Shown here: piece after piece, positions 17,076 to 41,198 of the stretch
Numbering within the stretch: position 1 is the stretch's first letter
Layout: the number at the start of each line of letters is the position of its first letter
Sequence record: NC_047838.1
Direction: 5' to 3' (one strand)
Length of the DNA stretch: 64,000 nt
The notes under the pieces: generated by a model
What the model was told of the DNA's origin: nothing
Databases searched by the model: none
Seen by the model: the letters and a program-made list of their open reading frames with translations, nothing else
Program-made: the position numbers and the translations under genes

Positions 17076-18161
17076 ATGTCTCAGTATAAGAAGACAGCAC
17101 TTGTTCTTGGTGCTGGTGGATTTATTGGAAGTCATATGGTCAAACGCCTACGCGCTGAGGGATATTGGGTGCGCGGTGTGGACCTTAAGGATACTGAGTT
17201 TTCATCGACTCAAGCACATGAATTTGTCACCGGTGATCTACGTGATGTGAGGTTTGTTCGTGAGTGTATCCAGTTCAAAGGATACCCTGGCAACTTTAAT
17301 GCAAACGTACCTTATCAGTATGTTGAACCTTTTGATGAGATCTATCAGTTTGCTGCTGATATGGGTGGAGCAGGATTTGTCTTTACTGGAGAGAATGATG
17401 CAGAGATTATGCATAACTCCTGTACTATTAACTTGAATGTTCTTGAGGAAGTTCGTAAACTGAACGAGACCTTCGATGGTGTTGTAAAAGAATGGACGGA
17501 AGCAAATCGTCCTAAGTTGGATCAACCCACCAAGATCTTCTACTCTGGATCTGCTTGCATGTATCCTGAGTATAATCAACTTGACCCTGATAACCCTGAT
17601 TGCCGTGAAGAATCAGCATACCCAGCAGCACCAGACTCAGAGTATGGGTGGGAGAAACTCTTCAGTGAGCGGTTGTATCTCGCTTATAATAGGAATCATG
17701 GCATTCCTATTTGTATTGCTCGCTACCACAATATCTTCGGACCAGAAGGAACCTGGGAGGGAGGAAGAGAGAAAGCGCCAGCTGCAATCTGCCGCAAGGT
17801 CGCTTATCTCCCGGAGTCGGGTGGAGCAATCGAGGTGTGGGGAGATGGTCTACAGACTCGTTCCTTCCTGTTCATTGATGAATGCATCGAAGCGACTTGG
17901 AGACTAATGCAGTCTGACTTCCAAGGACCTGTGAATATTGGTTCTGAAGAGATGGTTACAATCAATCAACTCGTGGATACCGTTGCTAAAGTTTCTGGTA
18001 AGGATGTGAACAAGATTCATATCGATGGTCCTCTTGGAGTCCGTGGTCGTAACTCTAACAACGATCTGATTCGTGAGAATCTTGGATGGGATTATCAGAT
18101 GACTCTTGAGGAGGGCATCGCTAAAACTTATGCATGGATTGAGGAGCAAACTAAACAGTGA
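17076..18161 (+). CDS. NAD-dependent epimerase, GDP-mannose 3,5-epimerase-like
   Basis: GAGGFIGSH, AADMGGAGF, SGSACMYP, YGWEK, GREKAPAA. Confidence 0.85.
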   Translation: MSQYKKTALVLGAGGFIGSHMVKRLRAEGYWVRGVDLKDTEFSSTQAHEFVTGDLRDVRFVRECIQFKGYPGNFNANVPYQYVEPFDEIYQFAADMGGAGFVFTGENDAEIMHNSCTINLNVLEEVRKLNETFDGVVKEWTEANRPKLDQPTKIFYSGSACMYPEYNQLDPDNPDCREESAYPAAPDSEYGWEKLFSERLYLAYNRNHGIPICIARYHNIFGPEGTWEGGREKAPAAICRKVAYLPESGGAIEVWGDGLQTRSFLFIDECIEATWRLMQSDFQGPVNIGSEEMVTINQLVDTVAKVSGKDVNKIHIDGPLGVRGRNSNNDLIRENLGWDYQMTLEEGIAKTYAWIEEQTKQ

Positions 18162-18964
18162 TTGGATTTAATTATCTTGGCAAACTGGGGCAACTTGGAA
18201 ATCAAATGTTCCAGGTTGCTGCCCTGAAAGGTATTGCTGCCAATCGTGGTTTTAACTTTTGCTTTCCAAACCATGATGAAGTTTTTGATGATGGTATCGG
18301 AAACAAACTGCACATCGAATTGTTCAAACCATTCAAGTTGTCTCGCACCAGTCAACTGAATCTTCAGGCAATTGATCCTGACAGACCTGTAGTTCAGGAG
18401 CAAGGATTTCAATTCAACGAAACTCTGTTTAATGAGTGTCCTGACTGGGTGAGTCTGTATGGATTCTTCCAGACTGAAAAATACTTCAAGCATATTGAAG
18501 ATGAGATCCGTGAGGACTTCTCATTTAAGGATGAGATTGAGGGACCATGTAAGGAGATGATTGAAGCAGTTGAAGAACCGATTGGTCTTCACATTCGTAG
18601 AGGAGATTTTCTTACGAATAACGCTAATCACAACAATCTGACCCTTGAATACTATGCTGAAGCATTAGATAAATTTAAGTCAGATAGAAATGTGATTATT
18701 TTTTCTGATGATACTGAGTGGTGTAAGCAACAGGAACTGTTCTCTGGCGATAGATTCCTTGTCTCAGAAAGTGGCAACCCATATGTTGATCTCTGTCTGA
18801 TGAGCATGTGCTCTGACTTTATTATTGCCAACAGCACGTTCTCCTGGTGGGGTGCATGGTTGGCGAATAGAGGTACAGTCATCGCTCCTAAGAAATGGTT
18901 CGGACCTAATAACGCACACCTAGATACTAGTGACTTATATCCTGAGAGTTGGACTGTGATATGA
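18158..18964 (+). CDS. GT11 alpha-1,2-fucosyltransferase-like
   Basis: GQLGNQMFQ, HIRRGDF, IFSDD, ANSTFSWWGAWL. Confidence 0.9.
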   Translation: MIGFNYLGKLGQLGNQMFQVAALKGIAANRGFNFCFPNHDEVFDDGIGNKLHIELFKPFKLSRTSQLNLQAIDPDRPVVQEQGFQFNETLFNECPDWVSLYGFFQTEKYFKHIEDEIREDFSFKDEIEGPCKEMIEAVEEPIGLHIRRGDFLTNNANHNNLTLEYYAEALDKFKSDRNVIIFSDDTEWCKQQELFSGDRFLVSESGNPYVDLCLMSMCSDFIIANSTFSWWGAWLANRGTVIAPKKWFGPNNAHLDTSDLYPESWTVI

Positions 18965-19677
18965 AACTTGCCGTTGTTTTTATTGGCACAGGTGACTATA
19001 TTAACTTCTTACCTTCATATTATGAGGCATGTGAAGAGTTTCTAGTCCCTAATACTGAGAAGACATACTTTGTTTTTACTGATGGTGACATCGGTGATCC
19101 TCCAGAGAATGTGAAACTGTATGAGCAAGAGCATCTGCCTTGGCCATATATCACTCTGGAGCGTTTTAAGTATATCTTAAAAGCAGAGTCTGACCTAGCA
19201 GAATTTGATTATGTTCTCTTCCTAGATGCAGACACCCGTGTGGTTGAGACTGTGACTGAGGAAGAATTGTTCACCGACAAGAAATATATTGGTGTTCATC
19301 ACCCCTGCCATTTCTTGGGTATGCCACCTCATGACAACCCTCCTGGTGCCTTTGAGACACGCTTTGAATCTGCTGCTGGTATTTCAGGTGATGATGACAC
19401 CTCAATTTACTTCCAGGGGTGTCTGTGGGGAGGTAAGATGCCCTATGTTCTTGATATGATTAGGGAGTTGGCACAGAGAACTCAGTTTGATTTAAATCGT
19501 GATGTCATCGCACAGTGGCATGATGAGAGTCAGATGAATAAATTCTTTTGTGAACGCAGAGAAGACGTTCATGTGATGGGACCAGAATATGCATACCCAG
19601 AATGCTTTGGAGCATACTGCACCTTTGAACCCAAAATCGTGCATCTAGCAAAGGACAATTCAAAGTATCAGCAGTAA
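18961..19677 (+). CDS. GT6 family glycosyltransferase
   Basis: FIGTGDY, WPYITLERF, FLDAD, WHDESQMNK. Confidence 0.85.
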   Translation: MKLAVVFIGTGDYINFLPSYYEACEEFLVPNTEKTYFVFTDGDIGDPPENVKLYEQEHLPWPYITLERFKYILKAESDLAEFDYVLFLDADTRVVETVTEEELFTDKKYIGVHHPCHFLGMPPHDNPPGAFETRFESAAGISGDDDTSIYFQGCLWGGKMPYVLDMIRELAQRTQFDLNRDVIAQWHDESQMNKFFCERREDVHVMGPEYAYPECFGAYCTFEPKIVHLAKDNSKYQQ

Positions 19678-20357
19678 TGTTTAACAGGTATGTAAATAAA
19701 GCAGACTTGCTTATCTACAGTAAGTTTATTTTAGATAATCAGTATCCTGATAGATACAGGATGAAGAACGATCAAGAGCAGCACCTTTATAAGACACCTG
19801 ATTGTTATTCAAAGTGGGCGTCTATCCTGATGATGTTTAATGAGATTAAAAAGGATGGTATAAAGGTTGTCGATCTGGGTGTAGGTGAGGGACCAGTTCC
19901 ACATATTATCTGTGACCAAGGATATGATGTCACAGGTGTTGATAATATGAGAATAGATCATCCATTTAAGACTAGTCTGGTACAGATGATTTTAAGAGAT
20001 GCCATCGAATTTCTTACAGATATTGAGGAAGAATCAGTTGATGTATTTACTGACAGTTGCTCTGTAACTCACTTTGATTTTGGTGGTGGACAAAATCCTG
20101 GATGGAAAAATGTGTTATCTAGTGTGTATCAAAAATTAAAACCAGGTGGATACTTTCTAATCGCTAGTGATTGTCATGCTCTACCTGAGAGAAAAACAAA
20201 CGGAGAGTTTTTGTTAGGAGAGGAAATTGCTGCTACTGCAAAGGAGTGTGGATTTACGTTGACCACAGAGTTTAATAATGATAAGATGGATATAATTTAT
20301 AGAAACGCTGGTCGAGAAACAGACTTATCCGTTGCAACCTTTATGTTAAAAAAATGA
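19677..20357 (+). CDS. class I SAM-dependent methyltransferase
   Basis: VVDLGVGEG motif I; LKPGGY. Confidence 0.8.
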   Translation: MFNRYVNKADLLIYSKFILDNQYPDRYRMKNDQEQHLYKTPDCYSKWASILMMFNEIKKDGIKVVDLGVGEGPVPHIICDQGYDVTGVDNMRIDHPFKTSLVQMILRDAIEFLTDIEEESVDVFTDSCSVTHFDFGGGQNPGWKNVLSSVYQKLKPGGYFLIASDCHALPERKTNGEFLLGEEIAATAKECGFTLTTEFNNDKMDIIYRNAGRETDLSVATFMLKK

Positions 20358-20890
20358 TTAAACTTGTTATTCTTGATGTCGATGGTGTAATGACTGACGG
20401 CAAGAAGTATTATGATCGTGACGGTAATGTCGTGATGAAAAACTTCTGTGATAAAGACTGGACTGCAGTCAAACGCTTTCGTGCGATTGGAATCCCTGTT
20501 GTATTTTTGACAGGCGACCCCTTCAACGCCAAAATTCTAAGTAATAGAAACTTACCATACGTTGTCAATCGTGGTGAAGGATTTCATAGAGATAAGGTAA
20601 ATTTCCTTGATGAGATTCTTCTTGACTACAATTGTGGAGCAGAGGATGTTGTTTATCTGGGTGACGATCTGTTTGATTATGGTATAATGGAGGCAGTAGG
20701 ACACCCTTACTCCATGGCAGACTCTCCTGCTATGCTTCAGAACATTTCTGTGCCTCTTGCCTGCAAGGGTGGAGAGAATGCTATCATGTATCTGTACGAA
20801 GATCTGGAGGAACTGGAGATTATTCCTCGTATTCCTTATGATGTTGTCATGGAAAAAATCTACGAACTTGATTTGAAGGAAAAATTCTGA
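20354..20890 (+). CDS. KdsC-like HAD phosphatase
   Basis: ILDVDGVMTDG, LTG, YLGDDLFD. Confidence 0.8.
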   Translation: MIKLVILDVDGVMTDGKKYYDRDGNVVMKNFCDKDWTAVKRFRAIGIPVVFLTGDPFNAKILSNRNLPYVVNRGEGFHRDKVNFLDEILLDYNCGAEDVVYLGDDLFDYGIMEAVGHPYSMADSPAMLQNISVPLACKGGENAIMYLYEDLEELEIIPRIPYDVVMEKIYELDLKEKF

Positions 20891-21561
20891 TGAAAGATAT
20901 TTCTCTTTATGGTCACTTGACGATTGATACGATTGTCGATGGTGTTAAAGAAAGAAAGACTCTGGGTTCTATGGCAAACGTCTGGAAAGCGTTGCTAGAA
21001 CTAGATGCGACCCTTGATATTGGTCTCTCACCTATTGATGTGGGTCAAGCGTTGATCTATATCGATAAACCTGCTGCTCAACGGTACTCAAAGGTGCAGT
21101 TGAGTCTGGTAGAACATCAGGCAAAGATCTACTCATCGAAGATTCATCACCTGATTTACCTTAATGAGTTGACTCGGACTGATTTCATCCCTGCTCTGGA
21201 CGGTATTATCACCGCAGACATCTGTCCTGGTAGGTCTGTCAATAAAGAGTTACTCAAGCATGTAGACTATCTGTTTATTTCTGATGAGGATATTGATGGT
21301 GACTTGTCTGACTACACAGAGGTAACAAGAGGATGGGTAATTCTGCATAGTGCCTCTGGTAGTGTGGTCTCAAACGGTGAGAAGGAGTTTTTCTACAAGT
21401 TGCCAGAGGATTTGATGCTCAGGGATGTGAATGTCCTTGGTGCAGGTGATACATTTGCCTCTTGTTTCTTGCATAAATTACTACAGAATGAAGGAGATAT
21501 CCACAACTGGATTGAATTTGCTCATTTAAAGACGACTGAAATCATTAGGAATTCAATATGA
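20890..21561 (+). CDS. PfkB family sugar kinase
   Basis: NVLGAGDTFASCF anion-hole motif. Confidence 0.75.
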   Translation: MKDISLYGHLTIDTIVDGVKERKTLGSMANVWKALLELDATLDIGLSPIDVGQALIYIDKPAAQRYSKVQLSLVEHQAKIYSSKIHHLIYLNELTRTDFIPALDGIITADICPGRSVNKELLKHVDYLFISDEDIDGDLSDYTEVTRGWVILHSASGSVVSNGEKEFFYKLPEDLMLRDVNVLGAGDTFASCFLHKLLQNEGDIHNWIEFAHLKTTEIIRNSI

Positions 21562-22715
21562 AACCAAATATCCTTGTCCCTATGGCAGGACTTGGGAGCC
21601 GCTTCATCAAAGAAGGGTTCAAGGTTCCCAAGCAGTTAATTAATATCAAAGATAAACATCTGATTGACATCTCTCTTGATTGTTTGGATTATGAGGGATG
21701 CAATCTTATTTTTGTGGTTCGTGATGAGACAGTCTATAATCACCACATGGACGAACTTCTGCGTAAGAAGTTTGGTGACGACATCAAAGTAGTTATTCTC
21801 GATAAACTAACAGATGGATCGGTTTCTAGTTGTCTTTACGCCGAAGAATATATTGACAACGATGCTCCTCTTATTATTCATACTCTGGATATTGAGTTTA
21901 GACCCGTTTTTAATCCTCATGTTATGACAGAGATGGATGCTGATGGACTGATCCTCACATTCAAATCAAACTCTGCAAACTACAGTTATGCTAAGGTCGG
22001 TGACGATGGATTTGTCACGGAGACTGCAGAGAAGAAAGCAATTAGCAATAATGCCTGTGTAGGAATCTATGGATTCAAGAAAGGATCTGACTTCTGCAAG
22101 TATGCACGAGACATGATCAACCGTGACCTACGCACTAAGAATGAGTTTTATATCTCTCCACTTTACAATCTTTTGATTGAAGACAACAAACAGATCAAGA
22201 CACGATCTGTAGATAAAATGCATGTCTTTGGAACTCCTGATGAATATCACTTCTACAAAGATAATGTCACTCGTCGTATTGGTGATAAACCTATTGCCAT
22301 TTGTTCTGATCATTCTGGCTTTGAGGCAAAAGAAATCTTCAAAGAAGTTCTAGACAAGCATGGTCTGGAGTATATTGACTTTGGAACTGTGTTGAATCGT
22401 GATTGTGACTACCGTGATTACATCGCATCAGCAGTCAAATCTATCGGTGAGCGTGATTGTGACTATGGATTTGGGTTTTGTCGCACAGGTCAAGGTGTGA
22501 ATATCTGTGCAAACAAGTACAAAGGTATTAGATCTGCTCTGATTTATGATAATTTTGCTATGGAAATGTCAATCCGACACAACTGTGCAAACTTTTTTGC
22601 TATCCCAGCAAAGGATGCAGACTATGATGTATTAGATAAGTATCTTGAGATCTGTTCCTCCAATACCTTTGATGGTGGTCGTCATCAGATTCGTATTCAG
22701 GAGTTGGAGAAGTGA
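21558..22715 (+). CDS. sugar-phosphate nucleotidyltransferase fused to an RpiB-family isomerase
   Basis: N-terminal VPMAGLGSRF...FGTPDE; C-terminal (from about 22290) SDHSG, FCRTGQG, ANKYKGIR, RHNCAN, GGRH. Confidence 0.85.
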   Translation: MKPNILVPMAGLGSRFIKEGFKVPKQLINIKDKHLIDISLDCLDYEGCNLIFVVRDETVYNHHMDELLRKKFGDDIKVVILDKLTDGSVSSCLYAEEYIDNDAPLIIHTLDIEFRPVFNPHVMTEMDADGLILTFKSNSANYSYAKVGDDGFVTETAEKKAISNNACVGIYGFKKGSDFCKYARDMINRDLRTKNEFYISPLYNLLIEDNKQIKTRSVDKMHVFGTPDEYHFYKDNVTRRIGDKPIAICSDHSGFEAKEIFKEVLDKHGLEYIDFGTVLNRDCDYRDYIASAVKSIGERDCDYGFGFCRTGQGVNICANKYKGIRSALIYDNFAMEMSIRHNCANFFAIPAKDADYDVLDKYLEICSSNTFDGGRHQIRIQELEK

Positions 22716-23032
22716 TTGAAGCAAATATTCAAGACTTTCATGGGGGATGGTTCGTAGGAGACTTCGATCCATCCCTTTTCAAGAACCCATTTTTTGAGGT
22801 TGCACACCATAAACATGAGAAAGGATGTGAAACATTCCCTCATTTTCACAAAGTCACTAATGAGTTGAACTATATTGTGAGTGGTGAACTCATGGTTTCT
22901 GGTAAACATTTGAAAGCAGGAGACATGTGGATCTATGAACCGAATGAAGTCTCTGATGTTGAGTTCCTTGAGGACTCTGAATTGATTATTGTAAGGTGGC
23001 CATCTATTCCCTCTGATAAGTATCCAGCATGA
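22712..23032 (+). CDS. cupin-domain protein
   Basis: GGWFVGDFDP...HFHKVTNELNYIVSG. Confidence 0.75.
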   Translation: MIEANIQDFHGGWFVGDFDPSLFKNPFFEVAHHKHEKGCETFPHFHKVTNELNYIVSGELMVSGKHLKAGDMWIYEPNEVSDVEFLEDSELIIVRWPSIPSDKYPA

Positions 23033-23781
23033 AACTAGCACTTTGTTTTTCGGGGCAACCCAGGTTCACAGAGGAGTGTTCTGGTAGCATTCTTGCTAAT
23101 GTTATCCAAAATCATGACGTTGATGTCTTCGCACACCTGTGGTTTGACGAAGATTTGCAGACAAAACCCTATAAATTTGGTGGAACTGGTGCATGGGAGG
23201 CACAGAGAATCCAAGAGAATGCTATTGAGACCTTCCAAAAGATCTACCAACCTGTCAGTCTGGCAGTAGAAAAGAGCAAATTCTTTGGTGATCCTGACCT
23301 TGATGCTGACTTTGAGGCATCAGAAGCAAAGTATTGGCCAGGTGGTATTGAAGAGCAACCAGACTTTCAGAAGAGACAAATCAACAACAGTCTCTCATAT
23401 TTCTACAGTCTCTGTGAGGCAAATAGATTAAGAAAACTGTATGAATATGATAATAAGATAAAATATGATTATGTAATTAGATGTAGAACCGATAGCGTGG
23501 TGCAAGTTCCCATCCCATATGAGAAATTTGACCCTAATGCAATCCATTTTACGTCACTTCAAGCACCTCCACCGTTCCTGAATGACTGGTTTAACTTCGG
23601 TGGACCCGAAGCGATGGAGTCATTTATGGGTGTATTCCCTCTCCTTCGCAGTTTGATCCGCTCAACTAAGGAGAGACGTGAGGGAACATGGTGCATCGAA
23701 CTAATTCATGTGGAGTTGCTAGATAGAATGGGCATCCCCATGCAGAGGCATCCAATCCCCGTCACACTTCCAAGATTCTGA
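23029..23781 (+). CDS. putative glycosyltransferase (paralog of 27869)
   Basis: ALCFSGQPRF, YDYVIRCRTD, DWF motifs. Confidence 0.6.
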   Translation: MKLALCFSGQPRFTEECSGSILANVIQNHDVDVFAHLWFDEDLQTKPYKFGGTGAWEAQRIQENAIETFQKIYQPVSLAVEKSKFFGDPDLDADFEASEAKYWPGGIEEQPDFQKRQINNSLSYFYSLCEANRLRKLYEYDNKIKYDYVIRCRTDSVVQVPIPYEKFDPNAIHFTSLQAPPPFLNDWFNFGGPEAMESFMGVFPLLRSLIRSTKERREGTWCIELIHVELLDRMGIPMQRHPIPVTLPRF

Positions 23782-23782
23782 T

Positions 23783-25357
23783 ATGAAAGTTGTAATTCCC
23801 ATGTCTGGGATGAGTCGTAGATTCTCAGTAGCAGGTTATAAAGATCCAAAATACCTTTTAGAGATTGATGGCATGACTGTCATCGAACATATTGTCAATC
23901 TGTATCCAAAAGACTCAGAGTTTGTATTCATTATTAATGACAAACATGAGAAAGAGACTGAAGTAGTTGAAGTTTTGAACCGTATTACAGATGATCCGAC
24001 CATCATTACCATCAATCAACATAAGAAAGGACCAGTTCATACGGTATTAGAGGCAGAGAGATTTATCGATGATGATGAACCTGTCATCGTTAATTACTGT
24101 GACTTCTCTATGAAGTGGGACTACGATGACTTTGTTTCTCACGTCGAAGACACCGAGTGTGATGGGTCTGTGATCTCATATACTGGATTCCACCCTCACA
24201 TGCTGGGTAGTGATAACTATGCTTTCTGTAGATTAAGAGAAGGATCATATCAGATCGAAGAGATTAGAGAGAAGCAACCATTTACTGACAACAAGATGTC
24301 AGAGTATGCCTCTACTGGCACTTACTATTTCAAGAAAGGTAAGTATATCAAGCATTATTTTCAGCAATTGATTGATGAAGAAATCAGTTGTAAGGATGAA
24401 TATTATGTCAGTCTTGTTTACAACTTGATGATTAAGGATGGACTTTATAACACCGTATATGAGGTCCCAAACATGCTTCAGTGGGGAACACCACTAGATG
24501 TGAAGATGTATCAGCAGTGGTCAAATTACTATGCTGACAATATGAATGGCATCAAACTTCTTAAAATTAAGGGATGCACCACCGTCATTCCCATGGCAGG
24601 TGCAGGTAGTAGATTCTCAAAAGAAGGATACGGAGTTCCCAAACCATTTCTTGAAGTGAATGGTGGATATATGATCAATCAGGCACTCCGATGCCTTCCT
24701 GAAACTGATAATAAGATCTTTGCATGTCTCAGATCTCATATGAGTATGCTGCCCCTAGAGGACTTTGAAAACGTTGTTTGGATTGATGAGGTCACAGAGG
24801 GACAAGCTTGCACCACAGAATTATTGGTTGACAAAGTGAACGAGGGTGATTCAATTCTACTCTCTGCATGTGATAATGGTGCTCTCTATGACTCAGATAA
24901 GTTTGCAGACCTTATTGAGAATGTTGAGAATGATATTGTAGTCTGGAGTTATAGAAATAATTACACAGCACACCACAATCCCAACATGTATTCGTGGTTA
25001 GATGTGGATGATGATGGAAATGTTAACAAGGTAAATGTCAAGAAATTCCCATATGGATCAAACCCTGTAGATGAATATGCTATAGTAGGGACTATGTTCT
25101 TTAGAAATAAAGAAGTTTATAAAAAATCTCTTGAACGACTGTATGAAATCGATGAGAGAGTTAACGGTGAGTTCTATGTAGATACACTATTGAACACCGC
25201 AATAGAACTTGGATACAAGGTCAAGAATTTTGAGATTGATCACTATATTTGTTGGGGAACACCTAACGATTTAAAGACTTATAGATACTGGCAAAGATTT
25301 TTTACATCTGTAGATTGGCACCCTTATGACTACTATAAAGATTTCTTCACAGATTAG
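23783..25357 (+). CDS. tandem double sugar-phosphate nucleotidyltransferase
   Basis: Two domains, IPMSGMSRRF..WGTPLD and (from about 24578) IPMAGAGSRF..WGTPND. Confidence 0.8.
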   Translation: MKVVIPMSGMSRRFSVAGYKDPKYLLEIDGMTVIEHIVNLYPKDSEFVFIINDKHEKETEVVEVLNRITDDPTIITINQHKKGPVHTVLEAERFIDDDEPVIVNYCDFSMKWDYDDFVSHVEDTECDGSVISYTGFHPHMLGSDNYAFCRLREGSYQIEEIREKQPFTDNKMSEYASTGTYYFKKGKYIKHYFQQLIDEEISCKDEYYVSLVYNLMIKDGLYNTVYEVPNMLQWGTPLDVKMYQQWSNYYADNMNGIKLLKIKGCTTVIPMAGAGSRFSKEGYGVPKPFLEVNGGYMINQALRCLPETDNKIFACLRSHMSMLPLEDFENVVWIDEVTEGQACTTELLVDKVNEGDSILLSACDNGALYDSDKFADLIENVENDIVVWSYRNNYTAHHNPNMYSWLDVDDDGNVNKVNVKKFPYGSNPVDEYAIVGTMFFRNKEVYKKSLERLYEIDERVNGEFYVDTLLNTAIELGYKVKNFEIDHYICWGTPNDLKTYRYWQRFFTSVDWHPYDYYKDFFTD

Positions 25358-32467: not shown

Positions 32468-33439
32468 ATGAAAATTGTTATCTGGGGTCATCCCCTTGGG
32501 ACGCATACTCATTCATATTCTAATCACGGATATTACCGAGCATTTAAACAACTAGGACATGATGTCCACTGGTTCCCTGATGAAGAACCACCAGAGGACT
32601 TTGACTTCTCCAACACCATCTTTATTGGTGAGGGAGATAGTGGTGCAAAACATATTCCCATCAACGACACTAGCACATACTTCATGATGTACCTTCCTGA
32701 TCCCAGGAGGTTTGATGGTGTCAAGAATCTAATCGATGTTCGTCTGACTGCAAAGAACTGTAAGGATCACATCTACGACTTCTCATTTGACGCGAGCAAG
32801 TGTAAGTCCATGGGTCCTAGCGTGTGGTTTGAACCTAAGAAAGAAGGTCTCATTCACTTCAAGAACGACTATGTAGACGCAGAGATTCCTGATACAAACA
32901 AGATGTATATCAGTTGGGCAACGGATCTGCTGCCTGATGAGATTGACTTTGATGAGATGTATCGTGAGCGTGAGAAAGCTATCTGGTTCTGTGGAACAAT
33001 CTCACCTCATGGTCAAGCAGAGAACTGGTCTAACTGGGAACCATTTATTGAGCAGTGTTCTAGTCATGGCTTAGATTTTCATTATAACGATGTGTGGCAG
33101 AATCCTTTGTCATTTGCTGATGTAATGGATCTGACCCGTCGATCTATGCTTGGTATCGATATTCGTGGTAAGTGGCACGTAGAGACCCGTGTGGTGACCT
33201 GTCGTGTGTTTAAGAACATCAGTTATGGTCATCTCGGCATGACTAACTCAGAGCAGATCTATCAAGAGATGGATGGCAATATGATTTACAATCCTGATCC
33301 TGCTCAACTATTCCATGATGGAATGAAGAATCGAACCAACTTTGATTTGATTCGTAAAGGTATGCAGTATGTCAAAGAGAATCACACATACATCAATCGT
33401 GCTACCTCCCTGTTGAAAGTATTTGAAGAAGTATCATGA
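32468..33439 (+). CDS. putative glycosyltransferase (GT-B like)
   Basis: HTHSY...RVFKNISYGHLG...HTYINR; start at ATG 32468. Confidence 0.6.
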   Translation: MKIVIWGHPLGTHTHSYSNHGYYRAFKQLGHDVHWFPDEEPPEDFDFSNTIFIGEGDSGAKHIPINDTSTYFMMYLPDPRRFDGVKNLIDVRLTAKNCKDHIYDFSFDASKCKSMGPSVWFEPKKEGLIHFKNDYVDAEIPDTNKMYISWATDLLPDEIDFDEMYREREKAIWFCGTISPHGQAENWSNWEPFIEQCSSHGLDFHYNDVWQNPLSFADVMDLTRRSMLGIDIRGKWHVETRVVTCRVFKNISYGHLGMTNSEQIYQEMDGNMIYNPDPAQLFHDGMKNRTNFDLIRKGMQYVKENHTYINRATSLLKVFEEVS

Positions 33440-34242
33440 ATAAAGCAACTATTGTCTCTGCTCTCTTTAATATTGAGAGAGAGGTTATGGATGGTAGACC
33501 TTGGGAGGAGTATCTTAAATGGTTTGACATCTTTCTGAAACTTAAGACACCGATGGTTCTCTTTGTCACAGAGGACCTTGTGGAGTTTATTGACGAAAGA
33601 CGTAAGGATATTCCAACTAAAGTCATCGTTCAGAAGACAGAAGACATCCCATACTTCTATCTTCATGACCAGATTCAAGAGATTCTTGACTCTGAAGAAT
33701 ACAAAGAGAAGATCTCTGATCCTGATAGGATTGAGTGTAATCATGCTATGTATTCTGTTATTCAGTATTCCAAATTCCCTTGGATGAAGAAAGCAGCAGA
33801 ACTGAATCCACATGACTCTGATGTATTCTTCTGGTTGGATGCTGGTGGATCTAGATTCTTCGGTGACTTTGACCTGAACAAAGAGTTCCCAGGTAAACCC
33901 GCATATGAATCCCTGGAGGAGATGGGTGAAAGTTTCTTGATTCAGATGAATTGTGATTACTACCCTGATCTATTTCAGAAGAAAGAACTCACCCTGTCAT
34001 ACCTCTTTGACAATAGATCATATGTTCTGGGTTCTCTGTTTGGTGGACATAAGAACTCTGTTGCAAAGGTGTGTGATATGGTAGAGGACATTCTGTTGAA
34101 CAGAATGATCAAGAAAGGTAATGTAAATAACGAACAGATTGCTCTAGGATACTTGGTTAAGAAGCATCCTGATGAGTTTTCTGTGTACTCCAGGACGAAT
34201 GGAGAGCACATGGACATCTTTAACGTATTAGCAAGCGAATGA
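33436..34242 (+). CDS. HtrL/YibB-like putative glycosyltransferase
   Basis: YSKF, FFWLDAG, LFGG, NNEQ. Confidence 0.65.
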   Translation: MNKATIVSALFNIEREVMDGRPWEEYLKWFDIFLKLKTPMVLFVTEDLVEFIDERRKDIPTKVIVQKTEDIPYFYLHDQIQEILDSEEYKEKISDPDRIECNHAMYSVIQYSKFPWMKKAAELNPHDSDVFFWLDAGGSRFFGDFDLNKEFPGKPAYESLEEMGESFLIQMNCDYYPDLFQKKELTLSYLFDNRSYVLGSLFGGHKNSVAKVCDMVEDILLNRMIKKGNVNNEQIALGYLVKKHPDEFSVYSRTNGEHMDIFNVLASE

Positions 34243-35192
34243 AAGTAGCAATTGTTGGACCTGGCATCATGCCTATCCCACCTACAGGATGGGGTGCAGT
34301 TGAGATTCTGATCTGGGATCAGAAACTTGCTCTTGAGAAACTGGGTCATGAAGTTCAGATTGTAAATACACCTAACCCTGTTGAAATTATTCAACAGATC
34401 AACGCATATCGACCCGACTTTGTTCATGTTCAGTATGATGACTTTGTTGAGGTTGTTCCCTACATTCAGTATCCTTGTGCGATTACCAGTCACTTTGGAT
34501 ATCTAGAGCAACCAAGTAGGTGGGATTACTATGGTCCTAGGGTAGCAAAGAAATTTGTAGAACTTAAACCAAATGTATTCTGTTTGTCTCAGGGCATTAA
34601 GGATACTTACAATAGTATGATGGGATTTAAAGATGAGAATCTTTTTGTCACACCTAACGGAGTCAACCTCACTAACTTCAAAGTTTCTGACAATCCTGAG
34701 TGTCCTGACAAGTCTATCTACCTTGCTAAGATTGACTATCGTAAGCGTCAGCACATGTTCCAGAGTATTGAGAGTCTGTATTTTGCTGGCAATAATGCAG
34801 ACCCCCGCTTTGATGTAAACACCAGATACCTGGGTGAGTGGTCCAAGGATCACCTCTATAACAACCTGACAGAGTTTGGCAACCTAATCCTACTGAGTGA
34901 TGGTGAAGCACATCCTCTGGTCTGTCTTGAGGCATTTGCTGCAGGTCTTGGTGTGGTTGTAAGTGAGTGGGCTGCTGCCAACCTAGATACTAGTAAGGGA
35001 TTTATCACAGTCATACCCGAATCGAAGATTAGCGATATCGAGTTTGTAGAATCGGAGATTATTAAGAACAGAGAATACTCTGCAGCAAATCGGGAAGAGA
35101 TTCTTGACTATGCAAAAGAGTTTGAATGGTCTAGAATAGTTGATGAATACTATGTGCCCGCGATGAACAAGATTATTGAGAGATATCAATGA
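34239..35192 (+). CDS. GT4-like glycosyltransferase
   Basis: PPTGWGAVE, TPNG, EAHPLVCLEAFAAG. Confidence 0.8.
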   Translation: MKVAIVGPGIMPIPPTGWGAVEILIWDQKLALEKLGHEVQIVNTPNPVEIIQQINAYRPDFVHVQYDDFVEVVPYIQYPCAITSHFGYLEQPSRWDYYGPRVAKKFVELKPNVFCLSQGIKDTYNSMMGFKDENLFVTPNGVNLTNFKVSDNPECPDKSIYLAKIDYRKRQHMFQSIESLYFAGNNADPRFDVNTRYLGEWSKDHLYNNLTEFGNLILLSDGEAHPLVCLEAFAAGLGVVVSEWAAANLDTSKGFITVIPESKISDIEFVESEIIKNREYSAANREEILDYAKEFEWSRIVDEYYVPAMNKIIERYQ

Positions 35193-36763
35193 AGAATCTG
35201 GTTAGTATTTTTGCAGGTCATGATGCAAACATTTCTTTCTATAGTGCAAAGGAAGATAAGTATTACACAATTGAGATTGAGAGACTTGTAAAGAAGAGAT
35301 ATTTTCGTCTGCATGTAGATAATGACGAGCAGACTGTTCGTGATATTCTTTTCGAGTGTAGAAATATTGCTGCCACAGAGTGGGGTATCACTAACGACTA
35401 TGAGACAGTTCTCGTCTCATCTGATGGTTGGATTAGTCCACCATCCATCATCAAAGAGGTGTTCAACACAGAGTCTGTGAAGACTGTTGCCCGACACCAT
35501 GAGACCCATGCTGCTGCAGCATTCTACAAGTCCCCATTTGATGAGGCACTTATCATCTCCTACGATGGTGGTGGCGATGATGGATTCTTTAACGTCTATC
35601 GTGGAGGACCTGATGGTATTGAAAGTTTTGAAAGCATTCAGGCAGACTTTGGTGGTGCCTATCTTTTGTGTGGATCTCTAATTCGTGAGGTAGCAGAGAA
35701 GAGTAGACATCAACTTGCTCTGTCTGGAAAGTTGATGGGTCTCTGTGCATATGGAAACGTCGTAGAGGAATACATTCCTGCATTTGAGAAGTTCTTCTTT
35801 GACAAGGACTACAAGAGACTTGCAGAGGAAACTGGTCTGCCTCTAAAGAATGTTGATGATCCATGGGCAAATCCTCTGGAGAACTGGGTCTTTGAGGGTC
35901 AGCAAGGATACGATATTGCTGCTACGGCACAGCAGGCATTTGAGAATGCATTCTTTACTGTCTTGCAGAGATACGAACCCGATCTTCCCCTGGTCCTTAC
36001 AGGTGGATGTGCCCTTAATGTGCTGGTAAATGAGAAGATCAAACAGGTAAGCACGCGACCTTTGTATGTCCCACCTGATCCCCATGATGGTAGTCTTTCT
36101 TTAGGACACCTGTTCTTGTATAAGAAACCAACCAAGAAAGTAGACATTACATATGCTGGTCTGCCTCTGGTTGACCGACATAGACTGAAGCGTGAGATCA
36201 AAAACTATAATGCCAAGAAGATTACCAAGGCAGATGCTGCTGAACTTCTGAAGCAAGGCAACATTATTGGATTTGTGTATGGAGATTCTGAGGTAGGACC
36301 ACGCGCACTAGGTAATCGTTCTATTGTATGTGACCCTAACATCAAGGAGATGAAGGACATCTTGAATGCTAAGGTCAAGTTCCGTGAATGGTATCGTCCC
36401 TTTGCTCCTTTCTGTAAGAAGGAAGAAGCACACAGATACTTTGACTCACCTAACTTTGAGAACCTTGAGTACATGAGCTATGCTCCTAAGGTTCGTGAAG
36501 AATATATTGAGAAACTGCCATCCATCACTCATGCTGACAATACTGCTAGACTGCAGACTGTCACAGAAGAGTCACACGCACACTTCTATGAGTTGCTTAC
36601 AGAGTTTGGTAAGATCTCAGAGACTAACGTGCTGCTGAATACTTCATTCAACATCAGAGGATTCCCTGTTCTCTCTTCAATTGAGGATGCTTTGTATGCT
36701 CTAAATAACACGCAAATGGATTATGTGGTGATTGAAGATTATCTTTTTGGTAAAGCAGAATGA
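35189..36763 (+). CDS. NodU/CmcH-family carbamoyltransferase
   Basis: GHDA, HHETHAA, DGGGD, GKLMGL, GPRALGNRS, REWYRPFAP, LNTSFN. Confidence 0.92.
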   Translation: MKNLVSIFAGHDANISFYSAKEDKYYTIEIERLVKKRYFRLHVDNDEQTVRDILFECRNIAATEWGITNDYETVLVSSDGWISPPSIIKEVFNTESVKTVARHHETHAAAAFYKSPFDEALIISYDGGGDDGFFNVYRGGPDGIESFESIQADFGGAYLLCGSLIREVAEKSRHQLALSGKLMGLCAYGNVVEEYIPAFEKFFFDKDYKRLAEETGLPLKNVDDPWANPLENWVFEGQQGYDIAATAQQAFENAFFTVLQRYEPDLPLVLTGGCALNVLVNEKIKQVSTRPLYVPPDPHDGSLSLGHLFLYKKPTKKVDITYAGLPLVDRHRLKREIKNYNAKKITKADAAELLKQGNIIGFVYGDSEVGPRALGNRSIVCDPNIKEMKDILNAKVKFREWYRPFAPFCKKEEAHRYFDSPNFENLEYMSYAPKVREEYIEKLPSITHADNTARLQTVTEESHAHFYELLTEFGKISETNVLLNTSFNIRGFPVLSSIEDALYALNNTQMDYVVIEDYLFGKAE

Positions 36764-37617
36764 AATTTGAATTAGGAGATTATACGATTGAGTGTGACAT
36801 AGATCCTACTCAAGAGAACAACGCTAGTGATGAGAGAGTTCCGATTGAGAGTATCGGATTCATCTATAACTGTCTTTTCAAACAGAAGAGAGCATTTGAG
36901 CACTCTGTAGAAGCAATCAGGGAGGTTTATCCTGATGCAAAGATCTATGCTGTCTCTGATGGTGGTCTTGACTACTCATACATGGAGGATGAGAACTTTA
37001 AGTTCTCCATGGAAGAAGATACCGTGTCTGATCTGAAGAAGGTTGGAGGTGAAAACTTCTTAAGTGAAGAGTGTCAGATGTATATTAAGAGAGGCATGGC
37101 AGCAACTCTTGATCGCCTGGAGCGTGGTATCGAATACTGTGGTAATCCAGAGTGGATCTGCATGACAGAACCTGATGTATTGATCCGTGGTAAGTTGACT
37201 GCTCCCGTTAATGGAAAACTCCTTGGATCACGTATCAATTGTGGGTGGAGAACACCAAAAGCACTTGAGCAATTCATGGGTCTCAACGAAGTGATTGCTG
37301 AAGTCGAGGGATCTATTCCAGTTCTGAGATGGGGTGCTGTTCCTGTAGTATTTCATACAGAAACTTTTCTGAAAGCACTTAAAATATACAAAGAAAACTT
37401 TAATATTGTAGACAAGTTCTCTGAGAAACATTACTCACCAGGCACCTTTGACTTGTTTATTGGTCTGGTCTTTGCTTTAATTGGTGAACCAGAAGTCTTT
37501 AACTCTGAGGTAACTGAGTGTCTTAGAAACCCTGGATGGCAGACATCAGGTCATCCAATTGTCCATCAATACAGAGAATATTACGAACAAAGCGATTTTT
37601 ACGGAGTACCAGCATGA
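36760..37617 (+). CDS. hypothetical protein, possible glycosyltransferase
   Basis: In the glycan operon; EPDV motif in a GT-A-like position. Confidence 0.5.
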   Translation: MKFELGDYTIECDIDPTQENNASDERVPIESIGFIYNCLFKQKRAFEHSVEAIREVYPDAKIYAVSDGGLDYSYMEDENFKFSMEEDTVSDLKKVGGENFLSEECQMYIKRGMAATLDRLERGIEYCGNPEWICMTEPDVLIRGKLTAPVNGKLLGSRINCGWRTPKALEQFMGLNEVIAEVEGSIPVLRWGAVPVVFHTETFLKALKIYKENFNIVDKFSEKHYSPGTFDLFIGLVFALIGEPEVFNSEVTECLRNPGWQTSGHPIVHQYREYYEQSDFYGVPA

Positions 37618-38354
37618 ACAGGATTGAAGATTACGCAGCACTAAAGAACAGAATCAACAAGTGGTTGGTTGATTATTTTGATAAAAGCAAGTCGGGGTGC
37701 TTTGTTGTAGGTGTGTCTGGTGGTATTGATTCTGCAGTTGTATCCACGCTGGCTGCTGAGACTGGTAAGCAGGTGTATGCCTTGAACATGCCTATTCATC
37801 AGAAACCAGAGCAAGAAGGACTATCTGCTGCCCATATCGAATGGTTGGAGGAGAAATATCCTAACGTAACTGGTATGAGATTTGATTTGACTGGACTCTT
37901 TGAGTCATTCAAAGATACGATAGGTAAGATTAACGAGACCAATCACTCTCTTGCTAACACCAGATCACGTCTGCGGATGGTGACCCTATATCAAATCGCA
38001 GGAAGATATGGTGGTCTTGTGGTTGGTACAGGAAATAAGGTTGAGGATTACGGTGTAGGATTCTATACTAAATATGGTGACGGTGGAGTTGACATCGCTC
38101 CTATCGCAGACCTTTATAAAACTGAAGTATGGGAACTTGGAAAATTCTTGGGAGTTGACTCAAGGATTATTGAAGCAAAACCAACTGATGGATTATGGGA
38201 TGATGGTAGAAATGATGAAGACCAACTAGGTGCTTCTTACGAAGACCTAGAGTATGCCATGGAGCATGGCACCGGACCTGCTGTTAGAGTCTTGCATGAC
38301 TTTCACGCGCAGAACAAACATAAGATGCAACCAATCCCTACATTCAAACTATGA
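37614..38354 (+). CDS. nadE: NH3-dependent NAD+ synthetase
   Basis: SGGIDS, RLRM, GTGNK.E...GFYTKYGDG, KTEV, PTDGL..DEDQLG; start at ATG 37614. Confidence 0.9.
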   Translation: MNRIEDYAALKNRINKWLVDYFDKSKSGCFVVGVSGGIDSAVVSTLAAETGKQVYALNMPIHQKPEQEGLSAAHIEWLEEKYPNVTGMRFDLTGLFESFKDTIGKINETNHSLANTRSRLRMVTLYQIAGRYGGLVVGTGNKVEDYGVGFYTKYGDGGVDIAPIADLYKTEVWELGKFLGVDSRIIEAKPTDGLWDDGRNDEDQLGASYEDLEYAMEHGTGPAVRVLHDFHAQNKHKMQPIPTFKL

Positions 38355-39130
38355 CGGCAACGATTGAAGATGTAAAAGAGTATTGGAATAGACAACCATG
38401 TAATGTCAAACATTCCAAGAAAGAAGTTGGCACAAGAGAATACTTTGAAGAAGTAGAAAGAAAAAGATACACCGCAGAACCACACATTCCTAGATTTGCT
38501 AACTTTCCTGCATGGAAGGGTAAGAAAGTTCTAGAGATTGGATGTGGTCTTGCGACTGAGGGTATCAACTTTGCTCATGATGGTGCTGATTATACAGCAA
38601 CTGATCTCTCTGCTGAGTCACTTGATCTTGCTAAAAAAAGATTTGAAGTCTATAATAGGGAAGGTAAATTTTATCAAGGGAATGCAGAAGAATTAGATTC
38701 TTTTCTTCCTAGACAAAAATTTGATTTGATTTATTCCTTTGGTGTCATTCACCATAGTCCTAATCCAAGTAAGATCTTTGACCAGATCTATGAATACATG
38801 GATGAGAACAGTGTTTTGAAAATTATGCTGTATGCAAAGGACTCATGGAAAGGTTACATGATTGAGGCAGGGCACGATCAACCAGAAGCACAGTATGGTT
38901 GCCCTATCGCCAACATGTATACTAATGATGAGGTCAAAGAACTGATGCGACATGGATTTGATATCTTGTCAATTGAACAAGATCATATCTTTCCATATCA
39001 AATCGAACCATACAAGCGAGGTGAGTTTGTAAAAGAACCCTGGTTTGAAGCCATGCCCGATGATATATTCAACGCAGTGAAGAAGAAACTTGGTTGGCAT
39101 TTACTTATTACAGCACGGAGATCACGATGA
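38351..39130 (+). CDS. class I SAM-dependent methyltransferase
   Basis: VLEIGCG, YSFGVIHH. Confidence 0.85.
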   Translation: MTATIEDVKEYWNRQPCNVKHSKKEVGTREYFEEVERKRYTAEPHIPRFANFPAWKGKKVLEIGCGLATEGINFAHDGADYTATDLSAESLDLAKKRFEVYNREGKFYQGNAEELDSFLPRQKFDLIYSFGVIHHSPNPSKIFDQIYEYMDENSVLKIMLYAKDSWKGYMIEAGHDQPEAQYGCPIANMYTNDEVKELMRHGFDILSIEQDHIFPYQIEPYKRGEFVKEPWFEAMPDDIFNAVKKKLGWHLLITARRSR

Positions 39131-40365
39131 CTAGAAGACTGTCTACAAAAGTTGCGATGATCGGTGTAGGCAAGTTAGGTCAAGCCTGCGCCGAAGTGAT
39201 GGCAGAAACATATCCTGTAGTTGGATATGATGTTATGCCAAGAGAACCCAGAAACTTCAGGATGGTTGATACTGTCCAGGAAGCAGTAGAGTTTGCAGAT
39301 ATCGTTTTCATCGCTGCTCCTACTCCTCATGACCCTCTGTATGATGGTCGCCAACCAACTGCACACCTACCCAATAAAGACTTTGACTACACAATTGTCA
39401 AAGAGATTATTGGTAATGTGAATCAGTATGCAGACAAGTCTAAACTTGTGGTGCTGATTTCTACAGTTCTTCCTGGCACTACACGTCGTGAACTGGAACC
39501 TCTGATCACTAATGCACGTTTTGTGTATAATCCTTACCTGATTGCCATGGGCACCGTGGGTTGGGACTTCTCTAATCCAGAGATGGTGATGATTGGAACT
39601 GAAGATGGATCAGAGACTGGTGATGCCAGAGAACTGATTAACTTCTATCGTCCTATGATGATCAACGATCCACGCTATGTGGTCGGCACCTGGGATGAGT
39701 GTGAATGTATTAAGATCTTCTACAATACCTTTATCTCTGCCAAACTCAGTCTGGTCAATATGATCCAGGACGTTGCAGAGAAGCAAGGTAATATCAACGT
39801 TGATGTGGTCACAGATGCTCTGAAGAACTCTAATCAGCGTATCATGGGTCCTCGCTACATGAAGGCAGGCATGGGTGATGGAGGTGCCTGTCACCCTAGA
39901 GATAACATCGCCCTGCGTTGGATGTCTGATAACCTTGAACTGGGTTATGACATCTTTGATGCGATCATGGAGGCAAGAGAGATTCAAGCAAAGAACCTTG
40001 CAAAGAAACTCCTTGAACCTGGTCTACCTGTAGTCATCATCGGTAAGGCATATAAACCACACGTTCACTATGTGGATGGTTCATATAGTATTCTGGTTGG
40101 ACACTATGTTGAAGAACTTGGTGGCACCGTGTATTATGATGATGACTACACAGGTGACAAACCTCCTGCAGATCTGGGTGCTGCATCCTATCTGCTAGGA
40201 CATGATCCAGAGTCTGCTTTCCTTGGTTGTCTTGATCCTGACCCTGACAAGGAAGAGTCTTCTATCTTCCCTGCGGGATCTGTGGTTATTGACCCCTGGA
40301 GAAAGTGCCCTGACATTCCAGGATGCACCGTAGTTCACTATGGCAATACTCGATTGAAGAAATGA
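39127..40365 (+). CDS. ugd: UDP-glucose/GDP-mannose 6-dehydrogenase family
   Basis: GVGKLG, PTP, STVLPGT, KIFYN, GGACHPRD; start at ATG 39127. Confidence 0.88.
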   Translation: MTRRLSTKVAMIGVGKLGQACAEVMAETYPVVGYDVMPREPRNFRMVDTVQEAVEFADIVFIAAPTPHDPLYDGRQPTAHLPNKDFDYTIVKEIIGNVNQYADKSKLVVLISTVLPGTTRRELEPLITNARFVYNPYLIAMGTVGWDFSNPEMVMIGTEDGSETGDARELINFYRPMMINDPRYVVGTWDECECIKIFYNTFISAKLSLVNMIQDVAEKQGNINVDVVTDALKNSNQRIMGPRYMKAGMGDGGACHPRDNIALRWMSDNLELGYDIFDAIMEAREIQAKNLAKKLLEPGLPVVIIGKAYKPHVHYVDGSYSILVGHYVEELGGTVYYDDDYTGDKPPADLGAASYLLGHDPESAFLGCLDPDPDKEESSIFPAGSVVIDPWRKCPDIPGCTVVHYGNTRLKK

Positions 40366-41198
40366 CCGAACTTGATAGGAACAAATCTGCATACAAGTTG
40401 CAGAACTTTGGTCCCGTATACTGCATCAACCTGGATGATCAGGAAGATCGATGGGAGTATATGGAGAATCAATTTAAATATTGGGAGGTCACAGATTATC
40501 ATCGCATCTCTGCTTATGATGGTAGAGACGATGACCTGAGTGATATTCTGACAGGTAGATATCCTACTAATATGTTGACGGGTGAGATTGGTTGCACAAC
40601 CTCTCACCTTCGTGCCATGAAGCACTTTCTTGAAACATCTGATTCGCCTTATGCAATCATGATGGAGGACGATTGTGATCTGGATATTGTTAGGTTCTGG
40701 AACTTTACCTGGGATGACCTGTATGCACAGTTTCCATATGACTGGGATGTGGTTCAACTTGCGATCATCTGCACGGGAGATCTGCATGTCAAACTACACA
40801 AGAGATTTGTAAATGATTTCTCTACTGCTTGCTATGTCATCAGCAGGTATCATGCCGAGAAACTTGTGCGTCTCCACTGCCGTGGTGAGAAATATAAACT
40901 GGATCAAGGCGTCAAACCCAGACCAGTTGCTGATGATCTGATTTATAATTCAGGTAATACGTTTGCTATCCCTCTCTTGATGTATAAGATTGAGCTAGGA
41001 TCTAGCATTCATGAGGATCATATTGATGCTTTCCATAGGGGTAATCATGAGGCACTATGGAACTACTGGTCTCAACATGGAGCAAATGTTGACATCGCAG
41101 ACTACATGAACTATGATCCTTACCTCGGTCGAATCACCGAGAACTCTGCTGCTCAACGAGCAAAAGAGGCACAAGAGGCGGAAAACCCATCCGCTTGA
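40362..41198 (+). CDS. GT25 family glycosyltransferase
   Basis: YCINLD, RISAYDG, GEIGCTTSH, MEDD; start at ATG 40362. Confidence 0.85.
   Translation: MTELDRNKSAYKLQNFGPVYCINLDDQEDRWEYMENQFKYWEVTDYHRISAYDGRDDDLSDILTGRYPTNMLTGEIGCTTSHLRAMKHFLETSDSPYAIMMEDDCDLDIVRFWNFTWDDLYAQFPYDWDVVQLAIICTGDLHVKLHKRFVNDFSTACYVISRYHAEKLVRLHCRGEKYKLDQGVKPRPVADDLIYNSGNTFAIPLLMYKIELGSSIHEDHIDAFHRGNHEALWNYWSQHGANVDIADYMNYDPYLGRITENSAAQRAKEAQEAENPSA

Follow-up and report, generated by a model that had tools for sequence, protein, structure and literature searches.

What does a cyanophage make with a run of 29 genes, most of them for sugar metabolism, and to what is the product attached? The question is raised by positions 17076-41198 of the window analysed here, the final 64 kb of the genome of Synechococcus phage Bellamy (MF351863.1 / NC_047838.1; 204,930 bp; Kyanoviridae; host WH8109), which matches record positions 140931-204930 at 100% identity (window position = record position - 140,930). 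As an earlier reading made from the letters alone (the sequence-only reading) had noticed, this locus is a single-strand run of 29 open reading frames (ORFs), all on the + strand and mostly overlapping; they correspond to GenBank genes 200-228 and occupy 11.8% of the Bellamy genome. Gene junctions overlap or abut, except for one gap of 1 nt and one of 24-45 nt at 32423, the sole real gap. As predicted from its genes, the cluster is a self-contained, fully cytoplasmic pathway in which several activated sugars are made, joined by 8-10 soluble glycosyltransferases and then decorated with methyl and carbamoyl groups. Lipopolysaccharide (LPS) gene clusters of cyanomyoviruses have already been described (Sullivan 2005, 2010; Iyer 2021; PMC1079782, PMC3037559, PMC7824862), and the statement in the sequence-only reading that LPS-like islands occur in large cyanomyoviruses, with the product not established, agrees with these papers.

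Sugar-metabolism functions were assigned with Pfam and NCBIfam to 25 of the 29 genes. The cluster encodes four nucleotidyltransferase domains (one in 21558-22715, two in 23783-25357 and one in 29944-30594), two kinases, two haloacid dehalogenase (HAD) phosphatases, five short-chain dehydrogenase/reductase (SDR) or dehydrogenase enzymes, two methyltransferases and one carbamoyltransferase, so that the domain count and the enzyme classes of the sequence-only reading (kinases, phosphatases, epimerases and tailoring enzymes) were all recovered. Its count of at least nine glycosyltransferases held up for eight, of which six (GT11, GT6, GT61, HtrL_YibB, GT4 and GT25) were verified by Pfam and two by predicted fold; a ninth is unproven, with two DUF7796 paralogues as candidates. 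The genes are as follows.

17076..18161, + strand: extended SDR sugar-nucleotide epimerase at the conserved 5' end of the cluster, kin of GDP-fucose synthase and GDP-mannose 3,5-epimerase (Pfam Epimerase, 1.6e-36)
18158..18964, + strand: GT11, alpha-1,2-fucosyltransferase family (Pfam, 2.8e-32)
18961..19677, + strand: GT6, minimal cyanophage/Parachlamydia type (Pfam, 2.3e-19; NCBIfam Gltr_6, 4.8e-55; PMC3516806)
19677..20357, + strand: S-adenosylmethionine (SAM) methyltransferase (Pfam Methyltransf_23/11)
20354..20890, + strand: KdsC-like HAD sugar-phosphate phosphatase (NCBIfam TIGR01670, 5.6e-22)
20890..21561, + strand: PfkB-like sugar kinase, a weak match (Pfam PfkB, 5.9e-05, under the curated cutoff)
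21558..22715, + strand: sugar-phosphate nucleotidyltransferase (N-terminal half) fused to an RpiB/LacAB sugar-phosphate isomerase (Pfam, NCBIfam)
22712..23032, + strand: small cupin (Pfam Cupin_2, 8e-05; phrog_24762)
23029..23781, + strand: DUF7796 protein, paralogue a, candidate transferase (Pfam/PHROG-level family assignment)
23783..25357, + strand: double nucleotidyltransferase with two NTP_transf_3/IspD-like domains (Pfam, NCBIfam)
25326..26438, + strand: GT61 (Pfam, 1e-16)
26492..27085, + strand: class II aldolase / ribulose-5-phosphate 4-epimerase family (Pfam, 4.2e-26; NCBIfam NF005123, 4.3e-19)
27082..27390, + strand: small HAD phosphatase with DxDxT motif, candidate for the GmhB role (motif and family)
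27369..27872, + strand: 167-aa protein with an HRG...E.D...HD motif, glycerophosphodiester phosphodiesterase-like by eye (no Pfam match)
27869..28624, + strand: DUF7796 protein, paralogue b (phrog_13607, 1e-64)
28621..29637, + strand: HddA-type D-glycero-D-manno-heptose 7-phosphate kinase (NCBIfam NF049969, 7.2e-83, full length)
29625..29975, + strand: cupin, candidate keto-sugar epimerase or sugar isomerase (family assignment)
29944..30594, + strand: HddC-type heptose-1-phosphate guanylyltransferase, nucleotidyltransferase domain (NCBIfam NF049965, 5.3e-17)
30588..31406, + strand: RmlD-like 4-keto reductase, putative C4-reductase (family only)
31403..32422, + strand: heptose 4,6-dehydratase (PDB 7us5, E 8e-168, 561 bits, full length, ~73% identity counted by hand)
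32468..33439, + strand: GT-B fold glycosyltransferase of an unnamed family (AlphaFold2 model, pLDDT 92.3, and Foldseek)
33436..34242, + strand: member of the HtrL/YibB family, which is known from the LPS-core locus (Pfam, 3.3e-19; TIGR02192, 1.8e-22)
34239..35192, + strand: GT4 (Pfam Glyco_transf_4, 1.3e-09)
35189..36763, + strand: NodU/NolO-type O-carbamoyltransferase (Pfam Carbam_trans_C, 2.9e-59; NodU, 1.3e-42)
36760..37617, + strand: GT-A fold transferase, retaining type, LgtC-, GT6- and Stealth-like (AlphaFold2 model, pLDDT 92.7, and Foldseek)
37614..38354, + strand: NadE-like PP-loop amidoligase, annotated as NAD synthetase (Pfam NAD_synthase, 4.2e-47; TIGR00552, 174 bits against a cutoff of 63.65)
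38351..39130, + strand: SAM methyltransferase (Pfam, 9e-16)
39127..40365, + strand: UDP-glucose/GDP-mannose-type nucleotide-sugar 6-dehydrogenase (Pfam; TIGR03026, 3.1e-37)
40362..41198, + strand: GT25, conserved 3' end of the cluster (Pfam, 1.9e-10)

A module for GDP-6-deoxy-heptose (28621-32422) is firmly predicted from four genes encoding an HddA kinase, an HddC guanylyltransferase, a 4,6-dehydratase and a C4-reductase, the reductase by family only. The match of the dehydratase to PDB 7us5 stands well apart from the runner-up, which scores 158 bits. In this route a heptose derived from sedoheptulose-7-phosphate would be phosphorylated by HddA, dephosphorylated by the small HAD phosphatase and activated with GDP by HddC, and the GDP-heptose would then be 4,6-dehydrated and reduced to GDP-6-deoxy-heptose. 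The phosphatase step can be filled by the DxDxT protein (27082..27390), for which the GenBank label 'phosphoheptose isomerase' is probably a misnomer. No SIS domain, and hence no SIS-type GmhA sedoheptulose-7-phosphate isomerase, was found in the 29 proteins with Pfam or NCBIfam; this step could be supplied by a host enzyme or by a cupin. The GenBank label 'cysteine dioxygenase' on the cupin at 29625..29975 found no support. HddA was found in only 3 phage genomes among 50,697 records, and the complete module of HddA, HddC, dehydratase and reductase in only 3 sequenced phages.

Two further branches may supply the other sugars. The dehydrogenase and the NadE-like amidoligase would yield a hexuronic acid or its amide, and the enzymes of 20354-27085 (KdsC-like HAD, PfkB-like kinase, nucleotidyltransferase-RpiB fusion, double nucleotidyltransferase and class II aldolase/epimerase) would yield a nucleoside diphosphate-activated pentose, pentitol or ketose. 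The PfkB-like protein is 89% identical in amino acid sequence in phage SynMITS9220M01. GT25, then GT11, then GT6 might successively build galactose, alpha-1,2-fucose (or L-galactose) and an alpha-1,3-hexose, a motif resembling the ABH blood-group antigens; Fuc-alpha-1,2-Gal is the acceptor of GT6 enzymes in the cyanophage/Parachlamydia clade (PMC3516806). The SDR epimerase at the 5' end has a partial NCBIfam match to GDP-L-fucose synthase (1e-23) and 78-86% amino acid identity in 3 phages, and its homologue in S-SCSM1 is annotated as GDP-mannose 3,5-epimerase (PMC9602691).

The NadE-like gene belongs by TIGR00552 to the NadE family, and its neighbourhood points away from NAD metabolism. Homologues with at least 48% identity were found in 11 marine phage genomes, those of pelagiphage HTVC008M and a 642-kb phage among them, and in all 11 a gene for a nucleotide-sugar 6-dehydrogenase follows directly downstream (in Bellamy after one intervening methyltransferase gene). 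These dehydrogenases are 26-81% identical to that of Bellamy. No link with NAD salvage genes was found in these genomes, the adjoining gene being the sugar dehydrogenase every time. This constant pairing suggests amidation of a uronic acid, and we infer that the protein carries out ATP-dependent amidation of the uronic acid carboxylate and not NAD supply. We know of no description of nucleotide-sugar uronate amidation for the NadE family. The pairing also flags a probable mis-annotation that enters counts of "NAD auxiliary metabolic genes" in marine viromes.

Other genes of the window bear on the same annotation. A set of NAD salvage genes at 2530-6698 was considered and rejected, as Pfam shows no NAMPT-type domain in the three genes scanned; these are three large genes, one of them annotated 'cytidyltransferase', with marginal Pfam matches only. 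The gene at 13819-14262 is labelled 'NAD synthetase' in GenBank, whereas Pfam identifies it as a SegE GIY-YIG homing endonuclease (1.3e-54). In SynMITS9220M01 and P-TIM68, similarly sized genes that also carry this label adjoin nrdB and may be homologues.

Two transferases were assigned by predicted fold. PDB sequence searches with the unassigned ORFs of the cluster returned no match, and the protein at 32468-33439 has no sequence match in Pfam, NCBIfam, PHROG or PDB; nevertheless, the top Foldseek matches of its AlphaFold model are all GT-B transferases. Its best viral fold matches are giant-virus multidomain glycosyltransferases, one of them named GT25, and a giant-virus protein named for DUF7796 appears in that list only as a weak match (rank 48, TM 0.32). 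The protein at 36760-37617, from a family of ~106 representatives, matches LgtC, BoGT6a and CpsY (E ~1e-06). A relationship of DUF7796 to GT-A enzymes was rejected (hhalign probability 1.4%; no PDB or other Pfam match). GT25 was found in 99 phage records, all of cyanophages or marine viruses. The GT-B protein has 723 metagenome relatives, and its gene is present in 7 phage genomes. A pattern-limited genome scan for cellular relatives found three metagenome-assembled genomes (MAGs) of environmental Chlamydiales with 32-34% identity, as well as a phage-like contig and a weak match in Xanthobacteraceae (28% identity). The Chlamydiales homologue sits inside a cellular glycan island, and these relatives echo the published cyanophage-Parachlamydia link for GT6 (PMC3516806). 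In Marine virus AG-345-E15, the GT-B homologue has one stop codon in the stretch aligned by tblastn, either its natural terminator or a break.

The fold of this protein bears on whether the glycan might be placed on hydroxymethylated bases of phage DNA for evasion of restriction. Phage transferases are known that place mono- to trisaccharides, including heptose, on 5-hydroxymethylcytosine (bioRxiv 10.1101/2023.12.21.572611), the PDB fold matches of the GT-B protein include T4 beta-glucosyltransferase, and the S-SCSM1 homologue is annotated as a DNA beta-glucosyltransferase. That identity was nonetheless rejected for the Bellamy protein: the T4 enzyme (TM 0.44-0.50) matches no better than GT-B enzymes acting on lipids or proteins and is not among the top 50 viral fold matches, while the cellular homologue lies in a glycan island. 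Neither a C5-methyltransferase with a TET/JBP enzyme nor a ThyA-like hydroxymethylase was found as a source of hydroxymethyl-pyrimidines: both DNA methyltransferases are N6-adenine types, none of the small, P4H-like 2-oxoglutarate oxygenases matches TET/JBP, and ThyX serves as thymidylate synthase. As 8-10 transferases also go far beyond any known DNA glycan, DNA hypermodification is highly improbable.

The small-molecule transferases TreT, BshA and SenB are further fold neighbours of the GT-B protein, and secondary-metabolite-like subclusters with carbamoyltransferases have been proposed in related phages by Iyer et al. (PMC7824862). Both observations would suit a different kind of product, for example a small-molecule glycoside, a glycoconjugate (soluble or secreted), or a glycosylated host protein such as an S-layer or motility protein. 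The cluster, however, encodes no core scaffold enzyme (nonribosomal peptide synthetase, polyketide synthase or similar) and no exporter, and the number and families of its transferases fit an oligosaccharide chain, which makes products of this kind unlikely.

None of the 29 cluster proteins has a membrane helix or signal peptide, and three secreted downstream neighbours were positive under the same test, in line with the sequence-only reading, which had seen no obvious signal peptides. The only multi-span ORFs matching annotated genes in the whole genome are psbA and psbD. No flippase, polymerase, ligase or initiating transferase is encoded anywhere in the phage, as judged from the cluster and a genome-wide check of membrane proteins; the absence of flippase, polymerase and initiating transferase noted earlier for the cluster thus extends to the genome. 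The initiating phosphoglycosyltransferase, flippase or transporter, polymerase and ligase of a Wzx/Wzy or ABC-transporter O-antigen or capsule locus are accordingly missing from both. Because there is no polymerase and there are 8-10 transferases, the product is predicted to be one defined hetero-oligosaccharide and not a polymer.

The sequence-only reading had argued from cytoplasmic synthesis to glycosylation of virion proteins. Its premises, soluble enzymes and no export genes, are sound; the step from them to the virion does not follow. Soluble or peripheral transferases in the cytoplasm also build lipooligosaccharide (LOS) cores, O-units linked to undecaprenyl diphosphate (Und-PP) and capsules, and the host exports such glycans via MsbA, Wzx or ABC transporters and WaaL. 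Since the host exports LOS and Und-PP glycans that are built in the cytoplasm, missing export genes do not indicate virion proteins.

Glycosylation of virion proteins, with the oligosaccharide built by soluble transferases straight onto structural proteins (capsid, fibre or others) in the cytoplasm, is nonetheless a real possibility, albeit one we hold with less than even confidence. Virion proteins of chloroviruses, mimivirus fibrils and some mycobacteriophages are glycosylated in this way. All enzymes being soluble, no phage membrane component would be needed; a single decorated oligosaccharide of defined structure would resemble chlorovirus capsid glycans; some members of the GT61 and GT25 families glycosylate proteins; and the predicted fold of the GT-B protein is closest to giant-virus multidomain enzymes. 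The defined oligosaccharide and this fold kinship lean somewhat towards the earlier view. In pelagimyophages, such genes lie within the hypervariable region of the tail fibres (PMC7029224). In Bellamy, by contrast, the cluster is ~38 kb from the capsid genes and surrounded by host-like auxiliary genes, and it has no late promoter. A collagen-hydroxylysine target for GT25 was rejected, as the G-X-Y runs of six fibre-region proteins are poly-glycine and not collagen. Likewise rejected as an in-cluster acceptor was the 'minor coat protein' adjoining GT25 in the related cluster of S-SSM7, which is merely a DUF6445 protein unrelated to Bellamy 27369-27872. A literature search returned nothing relevant on cluster expression or cyanophage virion glycans, and no report of glycosylated cyanophage virions. 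The fuller proposal of a phage-autonomous protein-glycosylation system that coats virions with an oligosaccharide of 6-deoxy-heptose, an ABH-like motif and a hexuronamide from the NadE-like enzyme is doubtful.

Transcription signals were found at both places proposed by the sequence-only reading, about 17021 and 32419.

17012..17049, + strand: terminator hairpin (17012-17038) with a sigma70-type promoter, its -35 element TTGTGT in the loop (17021-17026), a 17-nt spacer and -10 element TATGAT (17044-17049)
32419..32447, + strand: sigma70-type promoter TTGACT-17-TATGAT inside the cluster, at its one real gap between genes (10/12 matches)

The hairpin-plus-promoter layout, with compensatory changes in the stem, also precedes the cluster in SynMITS9220M01, S-SM2 and Sf-CH8 (4 phages with Bellamy), and the block at 32419 is invariant in Bellamy, SynMITS9220M01 and the phage-like contig mentioned above (3 genomes), while its flanks vary. 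The two promoters are conserved despite no overall enrichment of sigma70-like matches in the region (37 vs 47 expected; 34 vs 26 expected); terminator motifs are not enriched there either. The late-promoter core ATAAATA does not occur between 13793 and 41221, and is present at 41222, just before the first Phage_OMP gene downstream of the cluster. As read from these signals, the cluster is organized as two sigma70-driven transcription units of 20 and 9 genes. Given the sigma70-type promoters and the lack of a late core, its expression is probably early or middle.

Related structures flank the cluster. A hairpin-forming repeat (TTCTTGCT...AGCAAGTGG) occurs twice at 16908-16997, just upstream of the terminator, and both copies are conserved in SynMITS9220M01; the whole stretch 16900-17045, including the terminator hairpin, has a fold z-score of -3.3. 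Downstream, a perfect TTGACA-17-TATAAT promoter (~43288-43326) has its -35 element in the loop of a terminator-like hairpin, the same design as ahead of the cluster, and a second perfect promoter (44103-44131) is immediately followed by a hairpin (44134-44151).

The phage-like contig (PCAW01000016.1) is collinear with 24446-41309 at 84% nucleotide identity, and all 19 genes common to it and Bellamy are intact, with dN/dS of 0.02-0.27; dN/dS values against SynMITS9220M01 and AG-345-E15 are similar. The testable genes of the cluster are thus, by this measure, under purifying selection and functional. Purifying selection and intact genes at 84% nucleotide identity argue against the possibility, raised for such clusters, that they are stuffer DNA (PMC3037559). 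The contig itself, 25 kb long and binned to the MAG 'Methanobacteriota archaeon NP128', is a fragment of a Bellamy-like cyanophage, and its collinearity with Bellamy at this identity indicates that it is probably mis-binned.

The same genomic slot, after nrdB and tRNA genes and before Phage_OMP/DUF680, pstS and hli genes, is occupied in Bellamy, SynMITS9220M01, S-SM2, P-TIM68, S-SSM7 and Sf-CH8, and across these six phages the ends of the cluster are conserved and the middle is modular. Immediately 3' of the Bellamy cluster are two Phage_OMP (DUF680) beta-barrel genes and pstS (41331-41696, 41860-42261 and 42273-43268), all encoding signal peptides.

On balance, we weakly prefer a host envelope glycan as the acceptor, while giving this reading somewhat less than an even chance. 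The oligosaccharide would be assembled on the cytoplasmic side of the membrane, on a host lipid acceptor (lipid A-core or an Und-PP-linked sugar), and carried outward by the export systems of the host, and the surface of the infected cell would be repainted during the hours-long latent period, which may block competing phages, stop progeny from re-adsorbing or deter grazers. Several features are consistent with this: the conserved ends and modular middle are analogous to those of bacterial O-antigen and capsule loci; the immediate neighbours are predicted to be envelope-directed; loci for LPS, LOS and capsules typically contain GT25, HtrL/YibB, KdsC-like phosphatases and heptose enzymes; the apparent promoters are sigma70-type, with no late core in 13793-41221; and the Chlamydiales homologue of the GT-B gene belongs to a cellular glycan island. 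The published reading is also the host envelope (PMC1079782, PMC7824862, PMC7029224).

Other considerations weigh against an envelope acceptor. No result of this analysis identifies the acceptor, neither a GT9 heptosyltransferase nor a Kdo transferase was found, a cyanobacterial origin was established for no cluster gene, and giant-virus enzymes are among the fold neighbours of the GT-B protein. An infected cell that does not grow adds little new LPS to its envelope, and GDP-activated heptose serves capsules, O-antigens and protein glycans rather than the inner core. The phage seroconversion systems known to us all use membrane proteins, of which Bellamy has none apart from psbA and psbD.

Such clusters make up 10-25% of the genome in some of the most abundant viruses of the ocean and are strongly maintained by selection, yet to our knowledge nobody has established their glycan target in the 20 years since they became known in 2005. 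With the cell surface as target, infected cells would look different to other phages and grazers, affecting the mortality of a major primary producer; with the virion as target, tailed phages, like giant viruses, would be makers of a glycan coat of their own.

Among known systems, seroconversion by temperate phages (gtrABC, O-acetyltransferases, alternative Wzy) is alike in its proposed purpose, a change of the host surface that excludes other phages, but uses 1-3 membrane proteins to modify an existing O-antigen, whereas Bellamy is a lytic phage with 29 soluble enzymes. Giant viruses (chlorovirus capsid glycans, mimivirus fibrils) likewise encode sugar-nucleotide synthesis, soluble transferases and methyltransferases that work in the cytoplasm, and share fold-level kinship with the Bellamy GT-B protein; unlike them, no cyanophage has been shown to have a virion glycan, and the bacterial host of Bellamy has lipid-linked export routes of its own. 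The GDP-6-deoxy-heptose pathway of the Campylobacter jejuni capsule (PMC10680097; PDB 7us5) likewise comprises HddA, HddC, a 4,6-dehydratase (~73% identity) and a C4-reductase, and its glycan cluster also contains a methyltransferase and a uronic-acid branch, but Bellamy lacks the SIS-type GmhA, the KpsMT/KpsCS export genes and the polymerising transferases of that locus. A direct Campylobacter origin of the dehydratase was rejected as a conclusion: the family evolves slowly, with thousands of proteins at 76-80% identity, so that ~73% identity to 7us5 shows no direct transfer. The LPS clusters of P-SSM2, S-SSM7 and S-SM2 occupy the same slot near hli03 and pstS, by tRNA genes, and contain the same enzyme classes; S-SM2 has in common with Bellamy the SDR epimerase, GT11, GT25, cupin and small HAD phosphatase (54-86% amino acid identity), and the middle section differs. 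Bellamy, a T4-like cyanophage, has the large run of sugar-nucleotide and transferase genes, its location between nrdB/tRNAs and pstS/hli03, and the recurrent genes (GT25, T4-GC 266; GT11; cupin, T4-GC 307; small HAD, T4-GC 306) of these clusters. The Bellamy locus thus belongs to the cyanomyovirus LPS cluster class, to which it adds the heptose module, two newly assigned transferases and the pairing of the NadE-like gene with a sugar dehydrogenase.

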